64,000 bases of DNA from Anthoceros angustus (lineage: Eukaryota > Plantae > Anthocerotophyta). Below are positions 8,721 to 63,617 of this stretch, piece by piece. The stretch covers positions 434,001 to 498,000 of the forward strand of contig MU008154.1 in assembly GCA_010909165.1 (NCBI GenBank). The letters are read 5' to 3'. Position 1 is the stretch's first letter, and every line of letters starts with the position of its first letter. The notes under the pieces were generated by a model. That model did not search any database. It saw only the letters and a program-made list of their open reading frames with translations, and had not been told where the DNA came from. Both the position numbers and the translations under genes were made by a program.

Positions 8721-9834
8721 GACGTAGGTTACTAGTATCTACCTTAGACTATATTATGTAGGTAGGTACCTATATATAAATACATATATGGCATGCTTTC
8801 ATATTATATACTTTTTATATAAATTAATATTATTTAGTTATTTATATATTAATATATTTCATTTATGTTCCTCTCAGTTTTCAGACAAGTGTTCTCGAAA
8901 ATATTAGGCATGCTAAACGTATTTATGTAAGGCGTGGGTTGGCATATTTCATGCTCAAACAAATTCCTTCTCAGCTAAGCACCTCTTAACCACAGGATAG
9001 AGAAGGAACTGTCGACATGACACCCTCGACGCACCAAGACATTCAACGCATCCACCACCTCAGCAAGCCTCCGTTTCCACACAGCATGCCCCTGCCACCA
9101 CGTCCAAGCCCCTTCACGGCCAGCTGCCGTGTCGAATGAGCTGGAGGCCGTCCCATCCCAAATGGCCAGCTGCGAATCCAGCCAGCCAGGCTTGTGACGA
9201 TTGTTCACCCACAGGGCCTTCTTCGACCCCTTGTGCCGGAAATCCGGATGGCGGGGACTTCTCTTTTCCTTCCTGTTGTCCCACCACTGCGCCGGATCCG
9301 AGAAGAAGGCCTGCCACAGCAGCTCCTGCCTCTCCTTCGATGTCAATCCTTGATGCCCAACCCCTGCTCCTGTCACACAGATGAACCCATCCTCAATCCA
9401 CAATCTCTGCTTGGGTACAGCATCATGCTTGTCATTCATCCACACCGCATCTTGCTCAACCTCAAACTGCCCCGTACGCTAGCGCAAACTTGGTTTGCAG
9501 CACAGGGCTGGCAGCCATCACGCGTCCATCATGCCTGCCCACATTTCCCCGAAAATAATCTTCGGATGTAGCACCACGACGTAGGTTACTAGTATCTACC
9601 TTAGACTATATTATGTAGGTAGGTACCTATATATAAATACATATATGGCATGCTTTCATATTATATACTTTTTATATAAATTAATATTATTTAGTTATTT
9701 ATATATTAATATATTTCATTTATGTTCCTCTCCAGTTTTCAGACAAGTGTTCTCGAAAATATTAGGCATGCTAAACGTATTTATGTAAGGCGTGGGTTGG
9801 CATATTTCATGCTCAAACAAATTCTGCCTTCTCA
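8099..9834. repeat. Tandem duplication of the PPR 5' half plus promoter, unit ~867 bp; second copy is a truncated PPR/PDF fragment (8975-9445)
   Basis: Junction at 8966-8973 on shared ccttctca. The duplication is absent from the right-arm copy. Confidence 0.88.
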
Positions 9835-9840
9835 TATTTT

Positions 9841-10458
9841 ATGTTCTTCAAGATGGCGAGACCTAGCGTTGTTTCCTTGTTGGCCTTGGCCCGAGAGATC
9901 CGAAGACGTGCTAACTCTGGTAGGGATGAATTTAGACTTGATTGCCTTAAGGTGGCTAGATTGAGGGTGGAAGTAGCGGTGCGTCTTGAGGTGGCTCGAT
10001 GGAAGATGGGCAGTTGCGTCGCCCGGAAGCCTAGATTGAAGGTGTTGCTTCTTTCTTCCGGCAAGTCATGTATTGACTTGTTGAAGGTTTTGGATGTTGA
10101 AATAGCGAATGAAGAACCTACACCCTTTTGCGATGGTTAAGAATTCTTAATCTAGACCGGGATGCGGCGACAAGACATCATCAAGCATCGAGGATGCTGG
10201 CTGGTCAACTCGATTCTGTGAAGAATCGTGAGGAGGGTGTAGAAAAGCTCGGAAGTTAGTTATTGATGCTAGAGATGAGATGCTTGAAATCAAGAATACC
10301 GCTGTCCAACAAATTGGAACAGTAACGAAAAGCAAGGGCTAGGGCTGCAATGAGGACGAGAAAGGTATCATGTGCTTCAAGGCGCAATCGTTGCTATCCG
10401 TTACATAATTGCCATGGTAGTTGTTCTAAGTGTGAGCCGACTTGACATAGAGGATTAG
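9841..10458 (+). pseudogene. Frameshifted copy of the 213-aa orphan coiled-coil ORF (intact at 59579-60220)
   Basis: Same sequence as the reverse complement of 59579-60220 with several small deletions. Confidence 0.6.
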
Positions 10459-10861
10459 TGACGTCGTTTGGAATGGGTGATGGATGAAAAGGAAAAGAGT
10501 TTGAGAGGTATGCAACTCGTGAAAGATGACTCAAGTCATGATTATTATAGTTTGGTTTTAGTTGTAGTTTTAGTTTTAGACTACCTAGTGAAACCAGATA
10601 TTATGACAATCTATGTACTTGACGGTCATCCGTCCTTTTAGTGGAATTTCTTCAATTCTTCAAACTTGCTCTTATCTCGTCTCACCAACAGTCTGTGTGG
10701 CTTGCGTGCCCTGATCTTCCAACTGTCCGGATGTACGGATTGCATTTTTGTTGTTTGCACTTTCGAGGTCTGAAAAACGTTAAACCCTGAACCCAAGGGT
10801 GGTCTGCTGTAGTCGAGATGAATGCGATAGAGAAGGATTTCAGGGGTTTTCATTGGGCTGC

Positions 10862-10980
10862 AGAGGTTGGATCAGGCGGTGGGGATGATCCGGTCTGCTA
10901 AGGATGCTACAGGGGCGTCGTATGCTTTGCAGGAGCAGCTGGGGTTGTCGGCGGTGCAAGCAGAGGGGTTGCTGGCAATA
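10862..10980 (+). pseudogene. DNA gyrase subunit A exon fragment
   Basis: RLDQAVGMIRSAKDATGASYALQEQLGLSAVQAEGLLAI resembles the GyrA segment LD.VI..IR.......A...L....GLS..QA.AIL. It is preceded by ctgcag (splice-acceptor-like), and no other gyrA sequence was recognised in the window. Confidence 0.6.
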
Positions 10981-11349
10981 AGATGCACGCTGGGTCATTC
11001 ACGGTTTGAACTGAAAAGAGGTGGGGACACGGAATGCCCTGAGGCTGATAGCTGGGCATGCACTGTCAGCAAGGGCTCTGTTGATGAAGTGGCTTTGTGG
11101 CAAGATTGTGGTTGACCGTGTTACTTCTGCTTGCCTTTCTCAAGTCCTGTGCAAGCACTTGTGCGTAACTCACGGGCAGGCAGCTGCACTTGTGCTCAGA
11201 CTGCTTCTCTGAGCTGCGTACAGAAGAATCCATTTTGTACAGTATTGCGTGTTGCAAGAAGCACATTGCTTTCTTAAAAATTGAGTCTGTAAGAGAGGAA
11301 CGTGGAAGTCAATATCGCCCTACAATTACCAGTATCGTCCACTCTTGCT

Positions 11350-12448
11350 TTAAGCACTAGGCAACAGCATAAGCTGCTCGTTGTCTTCTTTCCTGGTGGG
11401 CACACCGCCAACAGGAAGATCAGATGGAGGTACAGTCCTCGACAGATCTCTGGGTACATCAAAATCATCTTGTCCACACCGCTGCTGAGGATGGGCCAGC
11501 AACATGCACATATTCTTGAACAGAAGTCTTGCCAGCCCACTGCTACTCTCGTAGATATAACCATCATGCTCACTTACTCGCTCAAGAGCATCCACTAGAG
11601 CGTCATAAACCTTTTGCGGACAATTGTCACGCGAAGGCTTGTCATGCAGATACATAACATCAAATGTAAACAGGCGTTGATTGTCAGGCCAGGGCAACGT
11701 CATCTCAGGAACAACAGACGATCTGCAGTACACCAGCACCTGGCAACATGTTGCCACCCATCCATTTCACCCATCAGCAACCAGTAGTCACATTGCAATG
11801 CACCACAGAACCACCATATCCAAGAACCAAGGACCGTTTAGACACACTTACCACTCGCAGACTTCTCCCAAGAGAGTGGCAAGCCTTTGCTTCCCCTGCA
11901 ACTGTCCGCAAGAGAGACGTGAGATTGCATCTGAGAGACAATCCATCCGAGCTGAGGCTCTTCACAGAATTGGTAATCACGTCCATGTCATTGGTGAGCT
12001 CATGCTGGTGCTGCCACCACAATGCAAGTTACGTTAGCAACAACACGTCAAGCCATCCCTTCCGATCCGAAGATCCATGGACGGGCATACACACCCAAGA
12101 GGCCTGATGAGCTAGCCGGAGAAACGCAAACCGGTGCTTTGGGTTGATAGCGAGCTTTGCATGCACGAAGAGCAGCAGCGCCTGCTTCACCACTTCCAAC
12201 CGAGTCATTCCTCCTCCCTTCACCCCTTGCGTCCTCATCTCGGAGTCCACCTCTCTGTCCGTGTCCACGCAGAGCACAATATCCTCGTATCGATGCGGCA
12301 TGTGCTGCAGCTCGTAGCGCACTGCGTTTCCCTGCACCCCGCCTCCATCGGGAGCGGGAGCGTCCCCCTGCCCCATGGGTGAAACTGAAAACCTAGTGTG
12401 AGGATCGTTCAAACGCATCGCACGCTCAAAGGCTGCGGGTAGCGACAT
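11350..12448 (-). CDS. BABAM1: BRISC/BRCA1-A complex member 1 (MERIT40/NBA1-like, vWA domain), 3 exons
   Basis: EDIVLCVDTD..RLEVVKQALLLFVHAKLAINPKHRFAF and LFTFDVMYLHDKPSRDNCPQKVYDALVDALERVSEHDGYIYES..HPQQRC match plant BABAM1-like proteins. Intron 1 is 12094-12011 (GT-AG). Start is ATG 12448 or 12376. Confidence 0.9.
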
Positions 12449-21784: not shown

Positions 21785-24742
21785 ATGATGCAGGCGCTGC
21801 GGGCGGGATCAGCATCGCAGCTAAGCTTTGTGCGGATACAGCGCCAGCAGGGGCAGAAGGGGCGGGATGCCGGGGGGAGGGCCGTGGTGGTGAGCGCGGC
21901 GGCGTCCAGGAGGCACAGCTCCTGCCCCGGCTGCTGCTCCTCGTCCTCGTCCTCGTCCTCGTCGCGGAGCCTGCGAGGTGGGTTCTTGGCTGGGAGCCCG
22001 CTGCCGCTGCCGCTGCGGGCTGCGAGGGAGATTGGAGAGAGGCCGGGTGAAGCGAGGCGGCGGGCGCGGCCAGGGCGGTGATTGCCACGGACCGCGGGGT
22101 CGGGGTGACGAGGGAATTCGCGCTGGACGGGGCGCCAGGGTGAAGGTGCAGGCGGTCGGGGCCGGGAATGGCGCGCCCGCCCTGGTGGAAGTGCGGGTGG
22201 AGGGCCACTCCGGGGACGCGCTGCTTCTGCACTGGGGCGCCACGGGAGGGGGGTCCCCGGGATGGCTGCTCCCGGACGCCCGCCCCCCCGGGACCTCGGA
22301 CTACAAGGGCAAGGCCCTCCAGACCCGCTTCGGCAAGGACGACGCCGGGCTGTCCCTTAAAATCGAGCTCCCGGACCCCGCGCTCGACGCCCTCGAGTTC
22401 CTCATCAAGGACGAGGCCAAGAACGCCTGGTTCAAGCTCGACGGCGGCAACTTCCGGGTGGAAATCCCCCGCCCGCAGCAGGACGTGAGCCAGATCCAGC
22501 TCCCGGAGGAGCTCGTCCAGGTGCAGGCCTACCTCCGGTGGGAGCGCAGAGGGAAGCAGAGCTACTCCCCGGAGCAGGAGAAGGCGGAGTATGAGGAGGC
22601 CAGGAGAGAGCTCCAGGAGGAGGTCGCGCGGGGGGCCTCCGTCGACGCGCTCAGGAGGAAGCTACTCGGAAACGATGCCGGCGGCGGGAGCAACGGGAAC
22701 GGGGCGGCAGCCGCGGCGGAGAATGGAGCCGCGCCCGACAAGGGAAGCGAGAACGGGAGCGGGAACGGGAGCTCCACGAAGCCGAAGGCGGGGCCCGTGG
22801 CGCATGTGAAGCGGAAGAGCCGGGATCCGGTGGAGCTGATCCAGAAAGTTGGGAAAGGCGGCGGAAAGGCGGCGGCGGCGGCGGCGCCGCCTCCCAGGCA
22901 GCCCACGCCGCTGGAGCTCGGGGCGGAGGTGATGGAGGGGGCGGATCAGGGGAAGGTGGTGCTGAAGAAGGTGTTCAGGTTCGGGGACGGGCAGGAGCTG
23001 CTGGTGTTGGTGACCAATCCTGAAGGGCTTCTGAAGGTGAGGCTGGCCACCAACATCAAGGAGCCTGTGGCTTTGCATTGGGCGTTGTCCAAGGAGCATG
23101 CTCGGGAATGGCTGGCTCCGCCCAAGAAGATTGTTCCTGCAGACTCCAATTTAGGGCCGAGCGCGTGCGAGACGCCCTTCAAATTAGGGTTTGCGGGAGA
23201 TGGTGGGCTGCAGTCGTTGGAGATTCCTGTGGGCGATGGTGGATATGTGGGGATGCCGTTTGTGTTCAGGGTGGGGGGGAATTGGTATAAGGATAATGGG
23301 TCGGATTTTTATGTTTCGTTCCAGGCTGCTGCTGCGAAGGCGGCGGCCAAGGCCGGAGGTGGGGAGGGCACGGCCAAGTCTTTTCTGGATGATGTGGCTG
23401 ACCAGGAGAGCGAGGCGGAGAGGTCGTTGATGCATCGGTACAATATTGCTGCTGGGTTTGCTGAGAGGGCGAAGAGGGAGGGGGAGTTGGCGTTGGCTGG
23501 GTTGTTGGTGTGGCTGAGGTATATGGCCACCAGGCAGCTAACATGGAACAAGAATTATAATGTGAAGCCCAGGGAGATCAGTGCTGCGCAGGATAGGCTG
23601 ACGAATTTGTTGCAGGAGACTTACAGGGAGCAGCCGGAGAATCGGGAGATGGTGAGGTTGATTATGGCGACTGTGGGGAGGGGGGGGCAGGGGGATGTTG
23701 GGCAGCGGATTCGGGATGAGATTCTCGTTATTCAGAGGAATAATGACTGTGCGGGGGGAATGATGGAGGAGTGGCACCAGAAGTTGCATAATAATACGAG
23801 TCCGGATGATGTGGTGATATGCCAGGCGTTGTTGGATCATATTCAGAGTGATTTCAGTGTGGATGTTTACTGGAAGACTCTGACAGATAATGGGATCTCG
23901 AAGCAGAGGTTGGCGAGTTATGACAGGCCGATTGTGTCGGAGCCCAAGTTCAGGCATGATCAAAAGGATGGGCTGGTGCGGGATCTGACTGCCTATATGA
24001 GGACGTTGAAGGCGGTGCATTCCGGGGCGGATTTGGAGTCAGCGATAGAGACTTGTATGGGGTATACTTCAGAGGGAAGGGGTTCATGGGGAGTGAAGAT
24101 TCATCCTATTAGTGGGTTGTCGTCGGATCTGCCTGGGTTGCTGCAGTTTGTGTTGGAGCACGTGGAGGATCAGCAGACTCTGCCGCTGATCGAGGGGTTG
24201 TTGGAGGCGAGGAGGAGCTGCGGCCCACGTTGCAGAATGCTCATGACAGGCTGCGGGATATTATTTTTCTGGACCTGGCGTTAGATTCCACTGTGCGAAC
24301 TGCGGTGGAGCGCGGGTTGGAGTCGTTCAGAAGGCGTCGCCTGCTGATTTGACACTGGTGATCAGTTGGTGGTGGAGAACTTGGCCCTGTCGGTGTCTGA
24401 TAATGAGGAGCTGGTGTATTGTTTGAAGACTGGTATCACATTCTGGAGCTATGCAAAGCTGGGGCAGACCAGTGGGCGTTGAGGGCCAAGGCTGTGCTTG
24501 ACAGGACGAGACTCGTATTAGCCGACAAAGCTGAGCACTATCAGACGATTCTGCAGCCGTCTGCGGAGTATCTGGGTGCCCTTCTGGGGGTGGAGAAGTG
24601 GGCGATTGAGATCTTTACGGAGGAGATGATCCGAGCTGGGTCTGCTGCGTCTCTGTCGCAGTTGGTGAACCAGCTTGATCCTATTCTGCGGAATATTGCA
24701 CATCTTGGGAGTTGGCAGGTTATCAGTCCGGTGGAAGTGCGG
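21785..24742 (+). CDS. GWD1: GWD copy A: N-terminal two-thirds with 1-nt frameshifts
   Basis: ORF 21978-24284 plus adjacent frames; ends at ISPVEVR, where the sequence jumps back to position ~22184. Confidence 0.8.
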
Positions 24743-27700
24743 TGGAGGGCCACTCCGGGGACGCGCTGCTTCTGCACTGGGGCGCCACGGGAGGGGGGTT
24801 CCCGGGATGGCTGCTCCCGGACGCCCGCCCCCCCGGGACCTCGGACTACAAGGGCAAGGCCCTCCAGACCCGCTTCGGCAAGGACGACGCCGGGCTGTCC
24901 CTTAAAATCGAGCTCCCGGACCCCGCGCTCGACGCCCTCGAGTTCCTCATCAAGGACGAGGCCAAGAACGCCTGGTTCAAGCTCGACGGCGGCAACTTCC
25001 GGTGGAAATCCCCGCCCGCAGCAGGACGTGAGCCAGATCCAGCTCCCGGAGGAGCTGCGGCCCACGTTGCAGATGCTCATGACAGGCTGCAGGATATTAT
25101 TTTTCTGGACCTGGCGTTAGATTCCACTGTGCGAACTGCGGTGGAGCGCGGGTTGGAGTCGTTCAGGAAGGCGTCGCCTGCTGATTTGACACTGGTGATC
25201 AGTTGGTGGTGGAGAACTTGGCCCTGTCGGTGTCTGATAATGAGGAGCTGGTGTATTGTTTGAAGACTGGTATCACATTCTGGAGCTATGCAAAGCTGGG
25301 GCAGACCAGTGGGCGTTGAGGGCCAAGGCTGTGCTTGACAGGACGAGACTCGTATTAGCCGACAAAGCTGAGCACTATCAGACGATTCTGCAGCCGTCTG
25401 CGGAGTATGAGGAGGCCAGGAGAGAGCTCCAGGAGGAGGTCGCGCGGGGCCTCCGTCGACGCGCTCAGGAGGAAGCTACTGGAAACGATGCCGGCGGCGG
25501 GAGCAACGGAACGGGGCGGCAGCCGCGGCGGAGAATGGAGCCGCGCCCGACAAGGAAGCGAGAACGGGAGGAACGGAGCTCCACGAAGCCGAAGGCGGGG
25601 CCCGTGGCGCATGTGAAGCGGAAGAGCCGGGATCCGGTGGAGCTGATCCAGAAGTTGGGAAAGGCGGCGGAAAGGCGGCGGCGGCGGCGCCGCCTCCCAG
25701 GCAGCCCACGCCGCTGGAGCTCGGGGCGGAGGTGATGGAGGGGCGGATCAGGAAGGTGGTGCTGAAGAAGGTGTTCAGGTTCGGGGACGGGCAGGAGCTG
25801 CTGGTGTTGGTGACCAATCCTGAAGGGCTTCTGAAGGTGAGGCTGGCCACCAACATCAAGGAGCCTGTGGCTTTGCATTGGGCGTTGTCCAAGGAGCATG
25901 CTCGGGAATGGCTGGCTCCGCCCAAGAAGATTGTTCCTGCAGACTCAATTTAGGGCCGAGCGCGTGCGAGACGCCCTTCAAATTAGGGTTTGCGGGAGAT
26001 GGTGGGCTGCAGTCGTTGGAGATTCCTGTGGGCGATTGAGATCTTTACGGAGGAGATGATCCGAGCTGGGTCTGCTGCGTCTCTGTCGCAGTTGGTGAAC
26101 CAGCTTGATCCTATTCTGCGGAATATTGCACATCTTGGGAGTTGGCAGGTTATCAGTCCGGTGGAAGTGCGGGGCTTTATTGAGGTTGTGGGCGAACTTG
26201 GTGATGTGGAGGATAAGAGGTACAGTAAGCCCACCATCCTGGTTTCAGGAAGGTGAAGGGAGAAGAGGAGATTCCCGATGGTGCTGTTGCAGTTCTCACC
26301 CCTGACATGCCGGATGTGCTTTCGCATGTGTCTGTGCCCGCAATGGCAAGGTGTGCTTCGCCACATGCTTTGATCCAGATGTGCTAGCTGATTTGCGGAA
26401 GAAGAAGGGCAAGGCTATCAGCATTCAGTTGAAAGGTGGCAATCTTGTTTACAGTGAGATATCGGATGCAGACGTGTCCAAGCATGGTGGTGCAGCAGCA
26501 GCTAATGATGCCCCACCACCTCATATAGTTTTGAAGAAGAAGAAGTTTGCCGGGAAGTATGCCATTTCAGCAGATCAGTTCAACCCTGACCTGGTGGGCG
26601 CCAAGTCTCGGAATATCGCTAACTTGAGGGGCAAAGTGCCATCTTGGTAAAATTGCCGACATCTGTGGCTCTGCCGTTTGGGACTTTTGAGAAGGTGCTG
26701 TCTGAGTATCAACCGTGGAGTTGCGGATGAGCTTGCTGCTCTGAACAAGTTGCAGGCTGGCGACTTTCACCGATTGAAGGAGGCCCGAGAGATTTGCTTG
26801 AAGCTGCAACCCCGCCCCAGCTGATTGAGGAGAGCTTAAAGCCACGATGAAGGGCTCCAACATGCCGTGGCCTGGGGATGAGGGTGACAAGAGATGGCAG
26901 CAAGCATGGACGGCCATAAAAGGTGTGGGGATCCAAGTGGAATGAAAGGGCCTACTTCAGCACCAGGAAGGCAGGAATTGATCATTCTGATCTCTGCATG
27001 GCTGTCCTAGTTCAGGAAGTCATTCAAGCAGACTATGCCTTCGTCATCCACACCACCAACCCGGCAAATGGTGATGCATCGGTACAATATTGCTGCTGGT
27101 TGCTGAGAGGGCGAAGAGGGAGGGGAGTTGGCGTTGGCTGGGTTGTTGGAGGCGAGGAGGAGCTGCGGCCCACGTTGCAGAATGCTCATGACAGGCTGCG
27201 GGATATTATTTTTCTGGACCTGGCGTTAGATTCCACTGTGCGAACTGCGGTGGAGCGCGGGTTGGAGTCGTTCAGAAGGCGTCGCCTGCTGATTTGACAC
27301 TGGTGATCAGTTGGTGGTGGAGAACTTGGCCCTGTCGGTGTCTGATAATGAGGAGCTGGTGTATTGTTTGAAAGACTGGTATCACATTCTGGAGCTATGC
27401 AAAGCTGGGGCAGACCAGTGGGCGTTGAGGGCCAAGGCTGTGCTTGACAGGACGAGACTCGTATTAGCCGACAAAGCTGAGCACTATCAGACGATTCTGC
27501 AGCCGTCTGCGGAGTATCTGGGTGCCCTTCTGGGGGTGGAGAAGTGGGCGATTGAGATCTTTACGGAGGAGATGATCCGAGCTGGGTCTGCTGCGTCTCT
27601 GTCGCAGTTGGTGAACCAGCTTGATCCTATTCTGCGGAATATTGCACATCTTGGGAGTTGGCAGGTTATCAGTCCGGTGGAAGTGCGGGGCTTTATTGAG

Positions 27701-30700
27701 GTTGTGGGCGAACTTGGTGATGTGGAGGATAAGAGGTACAGTAAGCCCACCATCCTGGTTTCAGGAAGGTGAAGGGAGAAGAGGAGATTCCCGATGGTGC
27801 TGTTGCAGTTCTCACCCCTGACATGCCGGATGTGCTTTCGCATGTGTCTGTGCGTGCAATGGCAAGGTGTGCTTCGCCACATGCTTTGATCCAGATGTGC
27901 TAGCTGATTTGCGGAAGAAGAAGGGCAAGGCTATCAGCATTCAGTTGAAAGGTGGCAATCTTGTTTACAGTGAGATATCGGATGCAGACGTGTCCAAGCA
28001 TGGTGGTGCAGCAGCAGCTAATGATGCCCCACCACCTCATATAGTTTTGAAGAAGAAGTTTGCCGGGAAGTATGCCATTTCAGCAGATCAGTTCAACCCT
28101 GACCTGGTGGGCGCCAAGTCTCGGAATATCGCTAACTTGAGGGGCAAAGTGCCATCTTGGGTAAAATTGCCGACATCTGTGGCTCTGCCGTTTGGGACTT
28201 TTGAGAAGGTGCTGTCTGAGTATCAACCGTGGAGTTGCGGATGAGCTTGCTGCTCTGAACAAGAATTATAATGTGAAGCCCAGGGAGATCAGTGCTGCGC
28301 AGGATAGGCTGACGAATTTGTTGCAGGAGACTTACAGGGAGCAGCCGGAGAATCGGGAGATGGTGAGGTTGATTATGGCGACTGTGGGGAGGGGGGGGCA
28401 GGGGGATGTTGGGCAGCGGATTCGGGATGAGATTCTCGTTATTCAGAGGAATAATGACTGTGCGGGGGGAATGATGGAGGAGTGGCACCAGAAGTTGCAT
28501 AATAATACGAGTCCGGATGATGTGGTGATATGCCAGGCGTTGTTGGATCATATTCAGAGTGATTTCAGTGTGGATGTTTACTGGAAGACTCTGACAGATA
28601 ATGGGATCTCGAAGCAGAGGTTGGCGAGTTATGACAGGCCGATTGTGTCGGAGCCCAAGTTCAGGCATGATCAAAAGGATGGGCTGGTGCGGGATCTGAC
28701 TGCCTATATGAGGACGTTGAAGGCGGTGCATTCCGGGGCGGATTTGGAGTCAGCGATAGAGACTTGTATGGGGTATACTTCAGAGGGGAAGGGGTTCATG
28801 GGGGGAGTGAAGATTCATCCTATTAGTGGGTTGTCGTCGGATCTGCCTGGGTTGCTGCAGTTTGTGTTGGAGCACGTGGAGGATCAGCAGACTCTGCCGC
28901 TGATCGAGGGGTTGTTGGAGGCGAGGAGGGAGCTGCGGCCCACGTTGCAGAATGCTCATGACAGGCTGCGGGATATTATTTTTCTGGACCTGGCGTTAGA
29001 TTCCACTGTGCGAACTGCGGTGGAGCGCGGGTTGGAGTCGTTCAGGAAGGCGTCGCCTGCTGATTTGACACTGGTGATCAGTTTGGTGGTGGAGAACTTG
29101 GCCCTGTCGGTGTCTGATAATGAGGAGCTGGTGTATTGTTTGAAAGACTGGTATCACATTCTGGAGCTATGCAAAGCTGGGGCAGACCAGTGGGCGTTGA
29201 GGGCCAAGGCTGTGCTTGACAGGACGAGACTCGTATTAGCCGACAAAGCTGAGCACTATCAGACGATTCTGCAGCCGTCTGCGGAGTATCTGGGTGCCCT
29301 TCTGGGGTGGAGAAGTGGGCGATTGAGATCTTTACGGAGGAGATGATCCGAGCTGGGTCTGCTGCGTCTCTGTCGCAGTTGGTGAACCAGCTTGATCCTA
29401 TTCTGCGGAATATTGCACATCTTGGGAGTTGGCAGGTTATCAGTCCGGTGGAAGTGCGGGGCTTTATTGAGGTTGTGGGCGAACTTGGTGATGTGGAGGA
29501 TAAGAGGTACAGTAAGCCCACCATCCTGGTTTCGGGAAGGGTGAAGGGAGAAGAGGAGATTCCCGATGGTGCTGTTGCAGTTCTCACCCCTGACATGCCG
29601 GATGTGCTTTCGCATGTGTCTGTGCGTGCCCGCAATGGCAAGGTGTGCTTCGCCACATGCTTTGATCCAGATGTGCTAGCTGATTTGCGGAAGAAGAAGG
29701 GCAAGGCTATCAGCATTCAGTTGAAAGGTGGCAATCTTGTTTACAGTGAGATATCGGATGCAGACGTGTCCAAGCATGGTGGTGCAGCAGCAGCTAATGA
29801 TGCCCCACCACCTCATATAGTTTTGAAGAAGAAGAAGTTTGCCGGGAAGTATGCCATTTCAGCAGATCAGTTCAACCCTGACCTGGTGGGCGCCAAGTCT
29901 CGGAATATCGCTAACTTGAGGGGCAAAGTGCCATCTTGGGTAAAATTGCCGACATCTGTGGCTCTGCCGTTTGGGACTTTTGAGAAGGTGCTGTCTGAGA
30001 GTATCAACCGTGGAGTTGCGGATGAGCTTGCTGCTCTGAACAAGAAGTTGCAGGCTGGCGACTTTCACCGATTGAAGGAGGCCCGAGAGATTTGCTTGAA
30101 GCTGCAACCCCCGCCCCAGCTGATTGAGGAGCTTAAAGCCACGATGAAGGGCTCCAACATGCCGTGGCCTGGGGATGAGGGTGACAAGAGATGGCAGCAA
30201 GCATGGACGGCCATAAAAAAGGTGTGGGGATCCAAGTGGAATGAAAGGGCCTACTTCAGCACCAGGAAGGCAGGAATTGATCATTCTGATCTCTGCATGG
30301 CTGTCCTAGTTCAGGAAGTCATTCAAGCAGACTATGCCTTCGTCATCCACACCACCAACCCGGCAAATGGTGATGCATCCGAGATCTACGCTGAGGTGGT
30401 GAAGGGTCTCGGGGAGACTCTTGTGGGTGCCTACTCTGGGCGTGCTCTAAGCTTCGTGACGAAGAAGACAGACTTGAAGGCTCCTAAGGTTCTTGGCTAC
30501 CCCAGCAAACGAATAGGCTTGTTCATCAAGCAGTCTGTCATCTTCAGGTCTGATTCAAACGGAGAAGATCTTGAAGGATATGCTGGAGCTGGTTTGTATG
30601 ATAGCGTGCCCATGGATCACGAGGAGGAACGGGTTGTGGATTATTCCACTGACAAGTTGCTGTTGGATGTTGAGTTCCAAAAGCAGATTCTCATGAAGAT

Positions 30701-30809
30701 AGCTGAAGCTGGATCAGCTGTTGAGAAGCTGTTGGGAACTGCTCAAGACATTGAGGGTGTCATCAAGAACGGAGAGTTGTACATTGTCCAAACGAGACCT
30801 CAAATGTAG
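21785..30809 (+). CDS. GWD1: Alpha-glucan water dikinase 1 (GWD/SEX1/R1), intronless; full ORF reconstructable only as a composite of partial copies
   Basis: Transit-peptide-like start MMQALRAGS (21785), two CBM45 modules (LLLHWGA..KALQTRF; VALHWALS..ACETPF), WHQKLHNNTSPDDVVICQA, phospho-His motif PDVLSHVSVRARN, nucleotide-binding C-terminus KVWGSKWNERA..GAGLYDSV..LYIVQTRPQM*. Confidence 0.9.
24730..28265 (+). pseudogene. Scrambled mosaic of internal GWD fragments
   Basis: Seven same-strand jumps between GWD segments at short shared words (see findings), with numerous small deletions. Confidence 0.85.
28257..30809 (+). CDS. GWD1: GWD copy with intact C-terminus (one frameshift near 29305)
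   Basis: ORFs 28192-29346 and 29307-30809. The G-run in cttctggggtgg is one G shorter than at 24582 and 27529. Confidence 0.85.
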
Positions 30810-31021
30810 ATATATTTAATTTATGTAACAGTGTCGTGTGTACTGTATCTTCTCAGACTTCAAAGTTTGTCTGCCGAAGCTGTCACTACATAAATAGTAG
30901 ATATGCGGCCCGAGAGGGCAAGCTTCTCTCAAATCACAGTTCTCTGTTCAAATCGCGCTCTGTCAAATCGCGTTTGTCCGTGTGACCAACAAAGGAGTCA
31001 GCAAGGGTCAAAACGTACGAT

Positions 31022-31102
31022 TGTTGACAATGGGATTCGAACCCATGCCCTTTCGGACCAGAACCTTAATCTGGCGCCTTAGACCAACTCGGCCATGTCA
31101 AC
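31022..31102 (-). tRNA. tRNA-Leu(AAG)
   Basis: Reverse complement GTTGACATGGCCGAGTTGGTCTAAGGCGCCAGATTAAGGTTCTGGTCCGAAAGGGCATGGGTTCGAATCCCATTGTCAACA: 81 nt, AAG anticodon, long variable arm, A and B boxes, followed by a TTTT run. Confidence 0.96.
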
Positions 31103-31912
31103 TGGATACCAACAGGCGGATCTGTAGGAATCTAAAGCAATTCCTCTCTTTGCTACAGCTTATATTCCAGATTCACTTCACGAGCATCGAAAGCCGCAAA
31201 TGCTTGAATCAAGCTGCGTACTGAGAATCAAGGACGTCGGAAAAATTCCCGAAGACGGGAAGAGAAGTGTTAGAAGTGAGCAAGTGAGCTTAACGCTCAG
31301 GACTTGAAAGGTTTGAGGGCTCACCATTTTCATGGAGAAGTCTCAAGACTTTGGCCATAATTCCGAATAAAAGTATACACTCAACGAAAGCAAATCTAAC
31401 AGCCAAACCGAGAAGAAGAATTTTATTTAAGTCCACTAAGGACGGATTTCCGTCATGGGACTTGGTACTTAACTCCCTTTACGCACCTCATCTAAGTACC
31501 GATCTAAGCTCAGGATGCTTAATCGCGAGGTTCTTATAAATGTGTGTCCATTTGGCCTAAGCCATTTGGACCACATTACCACGAGGCAGCATTGGTTGCC
31601 AAAGAAAGGAATTGGTTCTACTGAATTTTGGTTAACTTGTACTGCCTGCCTCCCACTGAAGTCCTGAATTGGTTCAGGAGCTCGGACTGAACCACATTTA
31701 GGTACTCTCAGCCTACTGTAGACCCCTTGCTGTGAAACTCGGAGACACAGCCAATCTTGGAGCAGCTGGTAATCTACACGGCAAAGTTCCCAAGACACTT
31801 TTTTGTTTGGCTCTCCAACTGGCCCATGTGGGATTCTTTGCTGATGTTAGTTGTCCTATTGGCTCTCCTGTGTGCAAATGTGTGCTCATACCCACAAGAT
31901 GCTGCAGCCGAG

Positions 31913-32325
31913 ACGCTGAGGTGGTGAAGGGTCTCAGGAGACTCTTGTGGGTGCCTACTCTGGGCGTGCTCTAAGCGAAGAAGACAGACTTGAAGGCTCC
32001 TAAGGTTCTTGGCTACCCCAGCAAACGAATAGGCTTGTTCATCAAGCAGTCTGTCATCTTCAGGTCTGATTCAAACGGAGAAGATCTTGAAGGATATGCT
32101 GGAGCTGGTTTGTATGATAGCGTGCCCATGGATCACGAGGAGGAACGGGTTGTGGATTATTCCACTGACAAGTTGCTGTTGGATGTTGAGTTCCAAAAGC
32201 AGATTCTCATGAAGATAGCTGAAGCTGGATCAGCTGTTGAGAAGCTGTTGGGAACTGCTCAAGACATTGAGGGTGTCATCAAGAACGGAGAGTTGTACAT
32301 TGTCCAAACGAGACCTCAAATGTAG
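31913..32325 (+). pseudogene. Duplicated GWD 3'-terminal fragment
   Basis: ORF 31990-32325 is identical to the last ~110 aa of 29307-30809. Confidence 0.85.
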
Positions 32326-32537
32326 ATATATTTAATTTATGTAACAGTGTCGTGTGTACTGTATCTTCTCAGACTTCAAAGTTTGTCTGCCGAAGCTGTC
32401 ACTACATAAATAGTAGATATGCGGCCCGAGAGGGCAAGCTTCTCTCAAATCACAGTTCTCTGTTCAAATCGCGCTCTGTCAAATCGCGTTTGTCCGTGTG
32501 ACCAACAAAGGAGTCAGCAAGGGTCAAAACGTACGAT

Positions 32538-32618
32538 TGTTGACAATGGGATTCGAACCCATGCCCTTTCGGACCAGAACCTTAATCTGGCGCCTTAGAC
32601 CAACTCGGCCATGTCAAC
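32538..32618 (-). tRNA. tRNA-Leu(AAG), duplicate copy
   Basis: Identical to 31022-31102. Confidence 0.95.
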
Positions 32619-32924
32619 TGGATACCAACAGGCGGATCTGTAGGAATCTAAAGCAATTCCTCTTTGCTACAGCTTATATTCCAGATTCACTTCACGAGCA
32701 TCGAAAGCCGCAAATGCTTGAATCAAGCTGCGTACTGAGAATCAAGGACGTCGGAAAAATTCCCGAAGACGGGAAGAGAAGTGTTAGAAGTGAGCAAGTG
32801 AGCTTAACGCTCAGGACTTGAAAGGTTTGAGGGCTCACCATTTTCATGGAGAAGTCTCAAGACTTTGGCCATAATTCCGAATAAAGTATACACTCAACGA
32901 AAGCAAATCTAACAGCCAAACCGA

Positions 32925-35110
32925 GAAGAAGAATTTTATTTAAGTCCACTAAGGACGGATTTCCGTCATGGGACTTGGTACTTAACTCCCTTTACGCACC
33001 TCATCTAAGTACCGATCTAAGCTCAGGATGCTTAATCGCGAGGTTCTTATAAATGTGTGTCCATTTGGCCTAAGCCATTTGGACCACATTACCACGAGGC
33101 GTAGCATTGGTTGCCAAAGAAAGGAATTGGTTCTACTGAATTTTGGTTAACTTGTACTGCCTGCCTCCCACTGAAGTCCTGAATTGGTTCAGGAGCTCGG
33201 ACTGAACCACATTTAGGTACTCTCAGCCTACTGTAGACCCCCTTGCTGTGAAACTCGGAGACACAGCCAATCTTGGAGCAGCTGGTAATCTACACGGCAA
33301 AGTTCCCAAGACACTTTTTTGTTTGGCTCTCCAACTGGCCCATGTGGGATTCTTTGCTGATGTTAGTTGTCCTATTGGCTCTCCTGTGTGCAAATGTGTG
33401 CTCATACCCACAAGATGCTGCAGCCGAGGACCCTCTGTTGGCTCAACATCCATCTCATTTTGGAATTTATTTTCCCTCTCTGACTAAGGCAAGCTTATCT
33501 TACAAGCCTCCAGCACCTGCCTTAGACATACATATGCCTGGTTCACCGCGCTCTGCTGCTGATAAACACCGGTACAAGTTGTAGAAGACATGACTCCTGA
33601 TGGGATAGAACTTGAGCAGAATGTCAACATCCAAGAGAAAGGAAAGGAGCTTGAGCCTCTGCCTGGTCCTGTGTCCCTGGAAACAGCTGGCTTGTTTGTC
33701 CATTTCCTCTTGTTGCTCACCATTGTCTGGTGGATCACATAAATGCACTCTTCGTGGAAGCAGTCATGTTTTAGTCACGTGACGTGACCATAGACGTGAC
33801 CAACAGCACGCCCTACACAATTTGAAGCCGGCGCGGAGCTTCTCGAGTTGTCTTAGCGGCAATGCCACCCTGTGGACCAAAGATATCTCGAAACCAAAGA
33901 TGCAGCTCCTGAACACTCTTGCACTCCTGACGGATCGTGATCAGCATAGGATCCATGTCACTCCCTCATCATGCTCTATCCATCTCCGGCCAGGCTCTTG
34001 AGAGACATGCGAATTCCTGTGCAGCTATCAACTTTAAAGAGTGGAGCTCGGGTACCATACAAGTTCCTAGGATAGAAGGATAGATCAGGAAAGTCCTGGT
34101 GGTTCTCCAACTCGCACTCGAGGAAGGCAAAAAGGCATGTCAATGGGGTGAGGAAGTTAGAACCTCCCCGAGATCACAAGATCACGGGCAGGCTCCGACT
34201 CCTTCACCCCATGGACATTGACATGGGGTGATTCAGCCCCTCGTCACCTCGAGGAACCCCAATACTTGCTCCACTCTTGCCAAACACGTAATTCAACACC
34301 GCATGTGTGTAATCCAAAGACAGCATACACCCCAGTAGATTACTGGGGTGGAGCAGACTTGCACGCACAGACTCTGTGCGTGCAAGTCTGCCTGATCAGC
34401 AATCTTGGTAGATGCTTGACACGTTTCAACGACCTCAATCACTACCAAACATGGGTCAAAAAAAAAAGACTTCGCGTTGCATTCACCTTTTTGTTACGAG
34501 GAACGTGCCACCCAGCTTTGCCAAATAGGGTGCAAGGTGATCCACTTTCTTACCCGCCAGGATTAGACGCAACAGCCAGCTTCAAAGTCCCATCACGATG
34601 ACATGGATCAACTGCTGCCCTGACATCCTTGTACATCTGAGGGTAGCTACACAATTCACAACGAACAGGCAAAAGACAATTGAACACATAAATCTGAAGT
34701 CCATACATATTCTTGATCACGTGAACAAGAAGATGACGAGCAACTAAAAACATTTCAAGTACGCTGTCCATATCTCTGTGGTAAATGCAATGGTCCATGC
34801 TTGGCTGGAAGGAAAGCTAGCAACCAGATTTACAATCAGAATTGGAAAGCTTACTTGGAACCCCCACTACACCATCAATGCACAGGACTCTGTGAGCAAA
34901 ACGACAGCACCAGGGGATCGAGGGGTGGCAGTGATGATAGCAGCACAAACAAATGAAAGAATGAGATCCATAATCCGAGGTAGATACATGGCATCTTGTC
35001 TGCGAAGGCATCTTTGAGCTCTACAAGCTGTGCAAAGAGGAATTCTTCTGCTAGAGAAAACAAGCTATCAACAGTTATCGCTCTTCCCTGGAAGCTCTCG
35101 GAAGCCATGT
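32925..35110 (-). mobile_element. Degenerate 5'-truncated L1-like LINE
   Basis: Minus-strand fragments KMPCIYLGL (RT-end P..YLG motif) and ARHLLVHVIKNMYGLQIYVFNCLLP (resembles GR..LIKSVL..LPIY.MS.F.LP) lie in the expected order about 2 kb upstream of the AATAAAA-(TTC)n tail at ~32925. Confidence 0.45.
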
Positions 35111-35410: not shown

Positions 35411-35466
35411 AACAGGTGTTCATAACAGGTAGCCCGTAGGGCCATGAAGCTGGGGGATGCTTACGT

Positions 35467-35926
35467 GGGGAGTTCCAATATGAACTCATGGGGAGTTCCG
35501 ATATGAACTCATGGGGAGTTCCGATATGAACTCATGGGGAGTTCCGATATGAACTCATGGGGAGTTCCGATATGAACTCATGGGGAGTTCCGATATGAAC
35601 TCATGGGGAGTTCCGATATGAACTCATGGGGAGTTCCGATATGAACTCATGGGGAGTTCCGATATGAACTCATGGGGAGTTCCGATATGAACTCATGGGG
35701 AGTTCCGATATGAACTCATGGGGAGTTCCGATATGAACTCATGGGGAGTTCCGATATGAACTCATGGGGAGTTCCGATATGAACTCATGGGGAGTTCCAA
35801 TATGAACTCATGGGGAGTTCCAATATGAACTCATGGGGAGTTCCAATATGAACTCATGGGGAGTTCCAATATGAACTCATGGGGAGTTCCAATATGAACT
35901 CAAGGGGAGTTCCAATACGAACTCAT
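35467..35926. repeat. Minisatellite, 20 x 23 bp (GGGGAGTTCCRATATGAACTCAT)
   Basis: Exact 23-bp period with no spacers; each unit contains the inverted pair GAGTTC/GAACTC. Confidence 0.97.
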
Positions 35927-36470
35927 GTATGGATGTCACTCCTTGAGGGGAGGACACCTCTATGATATTGTCCCGCCTCTTCTCAAGAAAAGACCTGGCA
36001 CCATGTAGCTCCAATCAAGCTTCCATTGCAACAGCTACATACAATGCGCCCCTCGGAATTTCAGGTGTGAATTTCCTCACGCTATTGATTTGTGAGGAAA
36101 ACACCCAAGAAAGGAACATTTGGACGCTGGTCGACTGATCTCCTCAGGATATCCAGGATCTATCAACAAACTTTTTTACTGTGCCATTCATCGTAGGCTA
36201 ATGTTTCAATCATGTCAGGTTTACATAGAGCAAAAAATGTAATCAGTATCAAATCCTTCAGCAACAATGCTCTTCATGACGAGGGACCTGTTACAAAACA
36301 TCTTGTTCCTCGTGTTCACTGGCTCAAGGGACTGTCAGGACAGCTTATGCGGACAGAGATGGAGGGGTGGTTAAGAGTTGCTGAACCAAGAAGTCTCAAG
36401 ACTTTGGCCAAAATTCCGAAGAAAGTGTACACTCTAGGAAAGCAAGCATAGCATCTGATTGCCATAATTC

Positions 36471-59578: not shown

Positions 59579-60220
59579 CTAATCCTCTATGTCAGAAGTC
59601 GTCGGCTCACACTTAGAACAACTACCATGGCAATTATGTAACGGATAGCAACGATTGCGCCTTGAAGCACATGATACCTTTCTCGTCCTCATTGCAGCCC
59701 TAGCCCTTGCTTTTTTCGTTGCCTGTTCCAATTTGTTGGACAGTTGGCGGTATTTACTGATTTCAAGCATCTCATCTCTAGCATCAATAACTAACTTCCG
59801 AGCTTTTTCTACACCCTCCTCACGATTCTTCACAGAATCGAGTTGACCAGCCAGCATCCTCGATGCTTCGATGATGTCTTGTCGCTGCGCATCCTGGTCT
59901 AGATTAAGAATTCTTAACCATCGCAAGAAGGGTGTAGGTTCTTCATTCGCTATTTCAACATCCAAAACCTTCAACAAGTCAATACATGACTTGTGCCGGG
60001 AAGAAAGACGCAACACCTTCAATCTAGGCTTCCGATGACGCAACGCTGCTTCCATCTTCCATCGAGCCACCTCAAGACGCACCGCTACTTCCACCCTCAA
60101 TCTAGCCACCTTAAGGCAATCAAGTCTAAATTCATCCCTACCAGAGTTAGCACGTCTTCGGATCTCTCGGGCCAAGGCCAACAAGGAAACAACGCTAGGT
60201 CTCGCCATCTTGAAGAACAT
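59579..60220 (-). CDS. Hypothetical 213-aa basic coiled-coil protein with a C-terminal Cys cluster, divergent from the PPR gene
   Basis: Intact ATG ORF, R/K/E-rich and helical-looking, ending CASRRNRCYPLHNCHGSCSKC. It shares a ~260-bp AT-rich spacer with the PPR gene. Confidence 0.5.
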   Translation of the reverse strand: MFFKMARPSVVSLLALAREIRRRANSGRDEFRLDCLKVARLRVEVAVRLEVARWKMEAALRHRKPRLKVLRLSSRHKSCIDLLKVLDVEIANEEPTPFLRWLRILNLDQDAQRQDIIEASRMLAGQLDSVKNREEGVEKARKLVIDARDEMLEISKYRQLSNKLEQATKKARARAAMRTRKVSCASRRNRCYPLHNCHGSCSKCEPTTSDIED

Positions 60221-60482
60221 AAAATATGAGAAGGCAGAATTTGTTTGACCATGAAATATGCCAACATACGCCTTACATAAATACGCTTAGCATGCCTAAT
60301 ATTTTCGAGAACACTTGTCTGAAAACTGGAGAGGAACATAAATGAAATATATTAATATATAAATAACTAAATAATATTAATTTGTATAAAAAGTATATAA
60401 TATGAAAGCATGCCTTATATGTATTTTATATAGGTACCTACCTACATAATATAGTCTAAGGTAGATACTAGTAACCTACGTC

Positions 60483-62780
60483 GTGGGTGCTACATCCGAA
60501 GATTATTTTCGGGGAAATGTGGGCAGGCATGATGGACGTGTGATGGCTGCCAGCCCTGTGCTGCAAACCAAGTTTGCGCTAGCGTACGGGGGCAGTTTGA
60601 GGGTTGAGCAAGATGCGGTGTGGATGAATGACAAGCATGATGCTGTACCCAAGCAGAGATTGTGGATTGAGGATGGGTTCATCTGTGTGACAGGAGCAGG
60701 GGTTGGGCATCAAGGATTGACATCGAAGGAGAGGCAGGAGCTGCTGTGGCAGGCCTTCTTCTCGGATCCGGCGCAGTGGTGGGACAACAGGAAGGAAAAG
60801 AGAAGTCCCCGCCATCCGGATTTCCGGCACAAGGGGTCGAAGAAGGCCCTGTGGGTGAACAATCGTCACAAGCCTGGCTGGCTGGATTCGCAGCTGGCCA
60901 TTTGGGATGGGACGGCCTCCAGCTCGGGATCCGAGACGGCAGCTGGCCGTGAAGGGGGCTTGGAGGTGGTGGCAGGGGGCATGCTGTGTGGAAACGGGGG
61001 GCTTGCTGAGGTGGTGGATGCGTTGAATGTCTTGGTGCGTCGAGGGTGTCATGTCGACAGTTCCCTTCTCTATCCTGTGGTTAAGAGGTGCTTAGCTGAG
61101 AAGGATTTGGTCGTTGGCAGGCGTGTTCATGACCTAATTCTGCAGAGTGGGAATGTGGCCGACCCGTTTTTGGCGAACCATATTATTCGCATGTATGCTT
61201 CTCATGCCATGTTGGAGGAAGCGAGGCAGGTGTTTGGCAACCTGGGTGTAGCCAATGCGTTTGTGTGGGCTTCCATTATCAAGGCGCATGCTGACCATGG
61301 GCAGCCGGCTCGGGCTGTCCGCCTGTACAGACAGATGGGATTTTCGGCAGTGAAGCCCAACGATTACGTGTTCGTGGCAGTGCTCAAAGCATGTGCCGCT
61401 GCAGCAGATCTGGTTTCCGGCAAGGAGGTACATGCTGACATTATGCGGAGTGTGGATTGCCCTGACATGTTTGTAGGAGTTGCCTGATAGACATGTATGC
61501 CAATGCGGGAGCTTGGAGGACGCTCGCAGCGTTTTTGACAGCATGGCCACGAAAGATGTGGTCGCGTGGACTGCCCTGATCTCAGGGTACGTGCAGCATG
61601 AGCTCGGTCCAGAAGCCCTTAAACTCTATAGAAGCATGCAACAGGAGGGCCTTGAGGCGGCTGATCGTGCTACCTTTATATGCCTCTTGAAGGCCTGTGG
61701 GAGTGTTGCAGCTTTACATCAAGGGAAGCAGCTACATTCTTTGATTGAGAGAAAGGGACTGGACGGTGATATACTAGTTGGTAGCTGTTTGGTAGATATG
61801 TATGCAAAATGCGGGAGTCTAGAGGATGCTCGTGGAGTGTTTGCCAGATTGGCAACCAGAGATGTGGTGGCATGGACTGCTTTGCTGAATGGTTATGCCA
61901 AACATGGTGAGGTAAGGCAGCAATACGGTGCTTTGAAGAGATGTTGCATCAAGGTGTGAAGCCCAACGCTGCTACCTTTGTTTCTCTGCTGGTGGCGTGT
62001 TGTCATGAAGGCTTGCTGAAGGAGGGGCAGAGGTATTTCAAGATGATGGTGGAGGAGCAGGGCATTGCACCCACAGATTCTCACTACAACTGCATGGTTG
62101 ACCTTCTTGGGCGGTCAGGCCGTCTGGACGAGGCAGAAAGTATGCTGCGGACCATGCCTTTTGAGAGCGAGTTTGTCGGATGGACATCCTTGCTAAGTTC
62201 GTGTAAAAGCTACAGTGACATAGAGCGGGGAAGGAGATGTTTTGACCGTCTGACAGCATTGGAACCAGGAAACGCAGCTGCCTATGTAGCCTTAGGAAGC
62301 ATTTATGCCAAAGCTGGCAGGTGGAAGGATGTAGACACGATAGAGATGCTGAGAAAGTCAGCAGCTGCTTGGAAGAAGCCCGCCAAGGCATGCATCGAAG
62401 TGAAGGATGAAGTGCACGAGTTCACTGTTGGAGAGGAGAGGCCTGATATTTCATCAGCGTTGAGGAGCATGAACTCTCGTGTGAAGGACGAAGGGGGCCA
62501 TGTTCCTCAGACAGAAGTCGTGCTGAAGGCCATGTCTGACAGTGACAAGGAAGATGCACTGTGTGGACATGCTGAGAAACTGGCCTTGGCTTATGGTCTC
62601 CTGAACACTCCCGGTGGCACAACTTTGGTAGTAACCAAGAACCTCCGGATGTGCAATGACTGCCACAGCAGCACCAAGATCCTGTCACACCTGGAGAAGC
62701 GAGAGATCGTTGTAAGAGATGCGCACCGTGTGCATCATTTCCTGGACGGGTCGTGTTCTTGTGGGGATCGGCACCAATGA
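60483..62780 (+). CDS. PDF-motif / PLS-PPR / E1-E2 / DYW:KP protein, copy 2
   Basis: ORFs 60483-61487, 61480-61959 and 61941-62780. Its three 1-nt deletions (~61477, ~61502, ~61912) are all intact in copy 1, so a composite full ORF of ~746 aa from ATG 60543 can be rebuilt. Ends GDRHQ*. Confidence 0.92.
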
Positions 62781-63066
62781 CAGGACGGAGGCTACAAGGA
62801 AATTCGGAACTGACATTTAAATAGTGATTAACGAGTGCGTATGATGAAAGGGAGATCCTTGATCCCGATCTCTGTGAGCGGGCCATTTGCCGTGGGCTCA
62901 CGAATGTCAGTTCCGGGTTCTCTTGTAGCCTCCGTTCTGGCTTTATTGCCGATTTTCACAAGAACGAGATTCGTTGGCCATTCACATTGGGCTCACGGGG
63001 ATGTCAGGGTTTTCTTTAGCCGCCGTTCTGGCGTACCCAGTCCCGATCCCCACAAGAACAAGACCC
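62755..63066 (+). repeat. Inverted copies of the DYW 3' end in the PPR downstream region (mirror at ~6120-6460)
   Basis: 62755-62817 pairs with 62903-62965 (85-nt loop). 63043-63066 is antisense to 62748-62771 at 23 of 24 positions. Confidence 0.85.
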
Positions 63067-63617
63067 CTTGTAAATGGCCCGCCCACAGAGATCGGCTCGA
63101 GTCCTCCACAATGGCATCCCGAGGGTGAACTGCGTAGCTCAACCGGTCACACAAGATGCCTACAGACATGAGGTTACAAGATGCCGGCAGATGGTATCCC
63201 AACACAAAATGCCTACAGGATTGCGATTCCTACAAAAACACCAGCATGATTTTTTCTGCTGCTTACAAGCCTACCAGATTCCCTCCTACATCCTACCAGC
63301 AAGCTGGTCCCAGTGCTACCTATAGCAGCTACCAAAAAGATAGCAGCTACCTTTTTGGCAGCTGCTACAGGTAGCTCTGGGATTTGACGTAGCCCGGATT
63401 ACAGGCTGCTTGGCTACGTCTGTCCACCTACGCCTATATATGTAGATTAATGAGTGGGTATTAGTAAGACGCAAACCTAATGTATGGTGTGAGACAAGGA
63501 GGAAGTGACCGTTGATTACGTGCTGCGAGATTTGGAGAAAAACGACGTGGAGGAGTGTTACATGTACAGAAGAAGGATACAGGCCTCGTGGTGCTGGATG
63601 TTGTTGCATCCAGCACT

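Follow-up and report, generated by a model that had tools for sequence, protein, structure and literature searches.

An OSB-type PDF motif at the N-terminus of a PPR-DYW:KP gene of Anthoceros angustus

What is a PDF motif, the hallmark of the organellar OSB proteins, doing in front of a PPR tract, in a gene whose C-terminus resembles that of U-to-C editing factors? The question is raised by a stretch of 64,000 nucleotides from the Anthoceros angustus genome (assembly GCA_010909165.1, contig MU008154.1, positions 434,001 to 498,000, forward strand; hereafter the window, in which all positions are counted). It contains two inverted copies, A and B, of a gene encoding a PDF motif, a PLS-type PPR tract, the motifs E1 and E2, and a DYW:KP domain. 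The pairing of PDF and PPR is real, apparently undescribed and a trait of a wider family. PPR-DYW factors are the subject of intensive study and of efforts to turn them into guide-free RNA base editors, and no U-to-C enzyme other than the KP class is known to us. Many editors of seed-free plants carry at their front an extra domain, conserved and folded, that seems to have gone unnoticed.

The PDF motif and the PPR-DYW:KP part of the gene

Copy A extends from 60543 to 62780 on the plus strand (first in-frame ATG to stop codon, according to its open reading frames (ORFs) and their translation). The N-terminal 64 residues (60543-60734, plus strand) are predicted to be disordered, are not conserved among the fusion proteins and presumably form an organellar presequence. 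They are followed by a PDF motif of 54 residues (60735-60896, plus strand), which was recognized with an E-value (E) of 5e-23 by a hidden Markov model (HMM) of 54 positions built from database matches. In the six-frame translation of the window, this HMM found only three sites, each with an E of about 1e-23: the motif of copy A, that of copy B (8307-8468, minus strand), whose DNA is identical to the former, and a third one in a truncated gene fragment (9167-9328, minus strand). These are the three sites at which a preliminary description of the window had placed a PDF-like peptide.

The first 150 residues were compared exhaustively with 1.84 billion representative proteins using phmmer. The search returned 687 matches at E<=1e-3, of which 228 reach E<=1e-10, and every match lies on query residues ~80-145. 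A Pfam SSB domain was present in 46 of the 150 top matches and an SSB-like domain, detected with a local profile, in 72 of 154 proteins; a single protein may have as many as 13 PDF-matching stretches. By these features, the matched set can be equated with the OSB family as described (PMC6963530, PMC4166229). The consensus of 146 aligned motifs reads ExLWxxxFxNPxxWWDNRxxKxNPxxPDFKHKxTGEALWLxxxxPxWV, and the motif in the window keeps all 14 invariant or nearly invariant residues (W16, P23, W26, D28, R30, K33, P39, D40, F41, K44, L50, W51, P58, and W60). Together with the HMM score and the homology to SSB-domain proteins with repeated PDF motifs, this identifies the N-terminal segment as a genuine homologue of the OSB PDF motif, as the preliminary description had proposed. 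The Pfam scan of the gene pieces left the N-terminus unscored because Pfam has no PDF model, and it gave no match to the SSB domain on any of the pieces. Word-indexed homologue searches returned no matches for the PDF region of the window and only its own shorter isoform for that of Ceratopteris, which reflects the word index and length limits rather than an absence of relatives.

AlphaFold2 predicted the PDF module as a compact fold of a helix, three short strands, and a further helix (mean predicted local distance difference test (pLDDT) score 84). In the model of residues 1-311, the pLDDT was below 50 for residues 1-59 and for a linker of 27 residues (126-152), 75-91 for the PDF module and 80-96 for the PPR helices. 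Since a linker of such low confidence (60918-60998, plus strand; of low complexity and predicted to be flexible) lies between the confidently modeled PDF and PPR parts, the PDF motif is, according to the model, a discrete domain on a flexible tether. Linker length and sequence vary among the homologues. A profile search of the PDB sequences gave 0 matches, and the comparison of the model with solved structures revealed no relative of the PDF fold (Foldseek, best E 2.5; VIA-align wide, best Z 4.2).

The PLS-type PPR tract of about 10 motifs occupies 61002-62063 (plus strand). The Pfam models PPR, PPR_1, PPR_2, and PPR_3 matched it, with PPR models hitting all three pieces into which the reading frame of copy A is divided (see below; e.g., PPR, E 6.5e-22). 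E1 (62064-62162, plus strand) and E2 (62163-62261, plus strand) were matched by the Pfam E_motif (E 3.6e-13); their borders were set by eye following the published PLS nomenclature. The DYW domain of 133 residues (62376-62774, plus strand; Pfam DYW_deaminase, E 3.7e-36) begins with KPAKA (62376-62390, residues 1-5 of the domain). HAE follows at 62568-62576 (residues 65-67), CNDC at 62652-62663 (residues 93-96), and the C-terminal DRH at 62766-62774, all on the plus strand. A lysine stands exactly at position 88 (codon 62637-62639, plus strand), where it is the first residue of KNLRM (62637-62651) within TKNLRMC. The Lys-Pro box reads KKPAKACIEV in the window and KKEPGRTWIEV in a PG-type protein of Sphagnum (P0083). 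In copy B and in the RNA contigs described below, DRH is directly followed by the stop codon, and copy A ends with DRHQ.

A KP box, HAE in place of HSE, Lys88, and a length of 132-133 residues distinguish KP from PG domains; DRH is one of two hornwort variants, and Lys88 is essential for U-to-C activity (PMC9478123, PMC11845758). U-to-C editing by the DYW:KP class has been shown with designer proteins (PMC9478123, PMC11845758). The tandem P, L, and S motifs, E1/E2 and a DYW domain with HxE...CxxC characterize the encoded protein as a PLS-class PPR-DYW protein, and its KP box, HAE, Lys88, 133 residues, and DRH triplet mark the C-terminus as a DYW:KP domain of the DRH type. The E1-E2 motifs and the DYW:KP domain with KPAxA, HAE, and DRH, all listed in the preliminary description, were thus recovered, with the domain length and Lys88 as additions. 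By analogy, the protein would be active in U-to-C editing.

The PDF-PPR family in seed-free plants

PPR motifs were present in 11 of the 150 best phmmer representatives, which carry the PDF motif N-terminally and originate from Sphagnum, Diphasiastrum, Ceratopteris, Adiantum, Pteridium, and further assemblies. With the PDF region of a protein of Sphagnum fallax as its seed, a search retrieved 93 proteins, every one of them a PPR protein; they belong to Sphagnum species, the liverwort Calypogeia fissa, and the lycophyte Diphasiastrum complanatum. A deaminase signature was detected in 39 of the 93; it contains HSE in every case (39/39) and a PG-type box in 26, and most of these proteins end with DYW. 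All 39 are accordingly classified as canonical C-to-U (PG/HSE) types. The remaining proteins have no HxE...CxxC signature, and many of them end at or near the E motifs. One PDF copy was found in 68 of 83 fusion proteins, two in 12, and three in 3, with a median start at residue 54. The consensus of PPR-borne motifs is almost the same as that of OSB-borne ones. Eleven PDF residues are invariant across the hornwort-type, fern, lycophyte, and moss proteins, and the linker is not conserved.

The fusion is thus found in proteins of the hornwort type and in those of ferns, lycophytes, mosses, and liverworts. The clades with U-to-C editing include neither mosses nor liverworts (PMC9478123, PMC4915041), and because fusions are abundant in these two groups, the pairing is not special to U-to-C editing. 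The specific co-occurrence of PDF and DYW:KP suggested in the preliminary description was rejected, as the fusion is abundant with DYW:PG and E-type PLS proteins in Sphagnum, Calypogeia, and Diphasiastrum, and every deaminase-bearing protein of the seeded search is of the HSE type. The idea that the PDF motif supplements or compensates for a short PPR tract was likewise abandoned, since the fusion proteins range from 444 to 1371 residues and are not tied to short tracts. The locus in the window is best classified as an ordinary member of a wider PDF-PPR family.

In a tree of 369 PDF motifs, which has 59 alignment columns and leaves 210 of 362 branches open, the label PPR changes 11 times, compared to 15.8 times after shuffling; this unresolved tree neither establishes nor rules out that the fusion arose only once. 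PDF-PPR fusions were seen only in seed-free plants, and the searches are unable to establish their absence elsewhere. No paper describing the fusion was found; as subscription papers were outside the search, its status as undescribed is provisional. The searchable literature on the term "PDF motif" contains relevant papers, none of them on PPR proteins. PPR proteins are not mentioned in a 2026 study of OSB evolution (PMC13393729), nor are PDF or OSB in a kingdom-wide survey of domain fusions in editing factors from the same year (PMC13386178). This agrees with the statement in the preliminary description that no functional study of such a fusion was known; none was found here within the searchable literature.

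Reading frames, RNA contigs, and layout of the locus

The preliminary description had treated 60741-62780 as a single frame. As assembled, copy A is split into three ORFs (60483-61487, 61480-61959, and 61941-62780) by three 1-nt deletions relative to copy B, located after 61475 (GG instead of GGG), 61501 (AA instead of AAA), and 61910 (GG instead of GGG), all inside the PPR tract. Copy B (6428-8660, minus strand; start also placed at 8720) is 99% identical over the gene and has frame lesions of its own. At the sites corresponding to 61154-55 (G run) and 61167 (T run), two and one nucleotides, respectively, are deleted, after which the frame is restored, and single nucleotides are lacking at the sites matching 61813 (G run) and 62069, the latter adjoining three substitutions (62069-72). 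The alignment of the copies over 2.5 kb contains 24 substitutions and 8 internal indel sites. All indel sites except one are homopolymer runs.

Contigs of four public runs were aligned on 59600-63200. Run X2, which is guessed to be RNA, comes from the same species and from the same sample as X1, the best-matching DNA run. The depth of X2 is zero over 59600-60446, where that of X1 is ~20, and stays steady at ~44 from 60540 to ~63064. This region is tiled by overlapping X2 contigs (60540-61292, 61275-61517, 61502-62101, 62072-62152, 62123-62667, 62652-62890, and 62861-63064), and the stretch that starts at 60540, spans the PDF motif, and enters the PPR tract is free of gaps. PDF and PPR are therefore joined on one contig with no intron between them. 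In the pieces listed, the only gaps of X2 relative to copy A are an additional G after 61475, an A after 61501, and a G after 61910, each of which restores the frame. X2 has the letters of copy B at 60931, 60935, 60965, 60998, 62201, 62360, 62509, 62531, 62775, and 62778, and its gap counts leave no room for the frame-breaking indels of that copy. It reads G at 61156, which turns the stretch "missing" from copy B into a run of four G. Runs of four G are the kind of site at which a long-read consensus loses bases. At 61338 and 61364, X2 has A and C, and both genomic copies and the X1 contigs have G and T, respectively; the RNA letters are shared by related organisms (X3 and X8 at 61338, X8 at 61364). 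Another paralogue, a strain difference, or an assembly error are possible causes of these mismatches.

Since X2 tiles 60540-63064 with the breaks of copy A repaired and without the indels of copy B, we conclude from these contigs that the organism has an intact transcript that lacks introns and joins PDF, PPR, and DYW in a single frame, with the reservation that X2 is RNA by guess. An uninterrupted frame fits the RNA contigs at each of the breaks; the DNA contigs of X1 depart from it at 61475 and back the additional A at 61501 and G at 61910. In the X1 contig pieces listed, 15 gaps and 9 substitutions were counted relative to the window. The excess of indels over substitutions and the near confinement of the lesions to homopolymers form the signature of consensus errors, and the frame breaks in both copies are probably for the most part, or entirely, errors of the assembly consensus rather than real lesions. 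X1 also has indels where the window is open, and it may be derived from long reads or be the source of the assembly itself.

The two copies lie in the arms of an inverted segmental duplication of ~5 kb (5908-11524 and 63333-58510), which was detected by self-comparison of the window; the arms are ~97% identical, separated by ~47 kb, and contain one PPR gene each (copy A, plus strand; copy B, minus strand). PPR genes other than the PDF-PPR copies were not found in the window. On the copy B side only, 870 bp are duplicated in tandem (8094-8966, repeated at 8960-9824), and as a result a third, truncated N-terminal gene fragment with a PDF motif is present (~9445-8975, minus strand). This tandem duplication could be real or an artefact of the assembly. 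Each arm also includes a second ORF on the strand opposite to its PPR gene (59579-60220, minus strand; the partner at 9841-10140, plus strand, is shortened). In the 3' flank of copy A, the final codons of the gene recur in inverted orientation (62746-63066), with arms at 62746-62817/62903-62974 (78% complementary) and 62748-62774/63040-63066 (93% complementary). Because the RNA contigs extend to ~63064, the 3' untranslated region could fold back onto the DYW terminus.

Elsewhere in the window, the region 22000-30400 is rich in G+C (up to 63%), strongly G-skewed, and built of nested repeats of 0.3-1.2 kb with 97-99% identity; long ORFs are located at 21978-24284, 28192-29346, and 29307-30809. 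A direct tandem duplication of ~1.5 kb with 99% identity (30388-31912/31913-33428) covers 30388-33428. A tandem array with a period of 23 bp, visible as a ladder of self-matches offset by 23 bases, occupies 35466-35927.

Possible role of the PDF motif and comparison with known systems

The reading that we slightly favor (probability about 0.55) is that of a nuclear, intron-less, transcribed gene in two inverted copies encoding an organelle-targeted PLS PPR DYW:KP editor of the DRH type, in which the PDF motif would serve as a nonspecific single-strand binder; the domain order, the PDF homology, the KP hallmarks, the RNA contigs, and the spread of the fusion are observed, and organelle targeting, the U-to-C activity of this particular protein, and the role of the PDF motif are what we infer here. 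The RNA segment bound by a PPR tract lies 5' of the edited base, and the N-terminal motif contacts the 5' end of this segment. The PPR tract of this protein would recognize the RNA on the 5' side of the target U, on which the KP domain, with the HAE...CxxC zinc site and Lys88, would act. The PDF motif, placed on a flexible linker of ~27 residues before the PPR tract, would most likely bind single-stranded nucleic acid independently of its sequence. By gripping the RNA (or nearby ssDNA) 5' of the PPR footprint, it might raise affinity or residence time.

Several points weigh against this reading. The extra G at 61475 is absent from the X1 DNA contigs, so that copy A may carry one real frameshift, and because X2 matches neither copy at 61338 and 61364, part of the RNA could stem from another paralogue. 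The X2 contigs are B-like, their RNA nature is a guess, and as contigs they fall short of proof that one full-length molecule exists. On the functional side, OSB1 and OSB2 prefer ssDNA over RNA in vitro (PMC4166229), which makes RNA binding by the PDF motif an assumption. The frameshift at 61475, the two mismatched letters and the fact that both copies are frame-broken as assembled would also fit two real pseudogenes in the window, with the RNA contigs derived from an intact paralogue elsewhere in the genome, as would the 7 synonymous and 9 non-synonymous coding differences between the copies, which are too few for any inference on selection. We nevertheless regard this as unlikely, as X2 bears the single-nucleotide variants of copy B at the 10 listed sites and has no room for its indels, the lesions lie almost only in homopolymers, indels exceed substitutions between X1 and the window, and the X1 depth shows no additional paralogue contig at >=90% likeness at most sites.

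The remaining explanations concern the PDF motif itself. It might tether the editor to ssDNA of the organellar nucleoid, such as transcription bubbles or replication and recombination intermediates, and thereby couple editing to transcription. The only known PDF biochemistry, ssDNA binding that is preferred over RNA binding (PMC4166229, PMC6963530), is in line with such a tether, and so are the retained OSB consensus residues and the flexible linker. A nucleoid association of PPR-DYW proteins is not evident in the present data, however, a single PDF motif is the rule in the fusions (68/83), and DNA binding and RNA binding cannot be separated from the sequence; on balance, we consider the tether somewhat improbable. 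That the motif is a module for protein contacts or assembly, mediating dimerization or docking to OSB or editosome partners instead of binding nucleic acid, would be compatible with a fold that has no solved relative, so that its function is unreadable from structure, with the tetramer reported for OSB2 (PMC6963530) and with the absence of MORF partners in seed-free plants (PMC13386178). The aromatic and basic character of its conserved residues (W, F, K, R) is, however, typical of proteins that bind single strands, and the isolated PDF motif of OSB1 binds ssDNA, which renders this function very unlikely. A redirection of the DYW:KP enzyme toward deamination or amination of ssDNA, raised as a possibility in the preliminary description, is purely speculative, as only the ssDNA binding of PDF motifs speaks for it, and is hardly credible: the motif is also present in dozens of PLS proteins of the ordinary C-to-U type or of the deaminase-less E type, PPR tracts read RNA, and we know of no DNA editing in these organelles.

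A broader proposal takes in the MORF/RIP proteins, accessory factors that are said to help PLS tracts bind RNA more strongly. Such proteins occur in seed plants only, and seed-free plants lack MORF partners (PMC13386178). As fusions were found only in seed-free plants, with their absence elsewhere not established, the PDF motif might be a cis-acting counterpart. It would then be an old, built-in RNA-binding helper, fused once early in land plants, kept in hornworts, liverworts, mosses, lycophytes, and ferns, and serving in cis the purpose that MORF/RIP proteins serve in trans in seed plants, which would have lost the fusion. We put this forward as an unlikely scenario; if true, an added PDF motif could improve weak synthetic PPR editors of both the C-to-U and the U-to-C type. 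A role of the PDF motif in editing could explain how editing proceeds without MORF proteins and would be its first function outside the OSB proteins. For the window itself, the outcome is modest: an ordinary family member, frame breaks that are probably assembly errors, and a KP-specific link that proved wrong.

Among known systems, the hornwort DRH-type PPR-DYW:KP proteins, the natural models for the designer U-to-C editor KP1 (PMC9478123), are similar in having the same PLS, E1, and E2 motifs and a KP domain of 133 residues with KP box, HAE, Lys88, CxxC, and DRH terminus. The published descriptions consulted cover the C-terminal part and the PPR motifs and do not mention an N-terminal PDF motif, and activity is reported for consensus designer proteins only. 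The OSB proteins (AtOSB1-4), which are nuclear-encoded and organellar, share the PDF motif and its conserved residues. The PDF motif of AtOSB1, the only one known to bind ssDNA, is enough for this binding (Zaegel 2006, reviewed in PMC6963530 and PMC4166229). In OSBs, an SSB-like OB fold occupies the center and PDF motifs, often in several copies, the C-terminal part (median relative start 0.65), whereas the protein encoded in the window has no SSB domain and a single N-terminal PDF motif (relative start ~0.1) before the PPR array; judged by this architecture, it shares a domain with the OSBs and is not a member of their family. MORF/RIP proteins have no relationship to the PDF motif in sequence or fold and act in trans, the functional analogy being a hypothesis only. 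The same order of presequence, PDF motif, short linker, and PPR tract is found in the PDF-PLS-(E/DYW:PG) proteins of Sphagnum, Calypogeia fissa, Diphasiastrum complanatum, Ceratopteris, Adiantum, and Pteridium (e.g., CAM6033764.1 and KAJ7517632.1, uncharacterized entries), whose PDF motifs are 35-55% identical to that in the window. Some of them have 2-3 PDF copies, and their C-termini differ, with HSE, a PG box where detected and mostly a DYW end, or a stop at E2, in contrast to the KP/DRH terminus encoded in the window.

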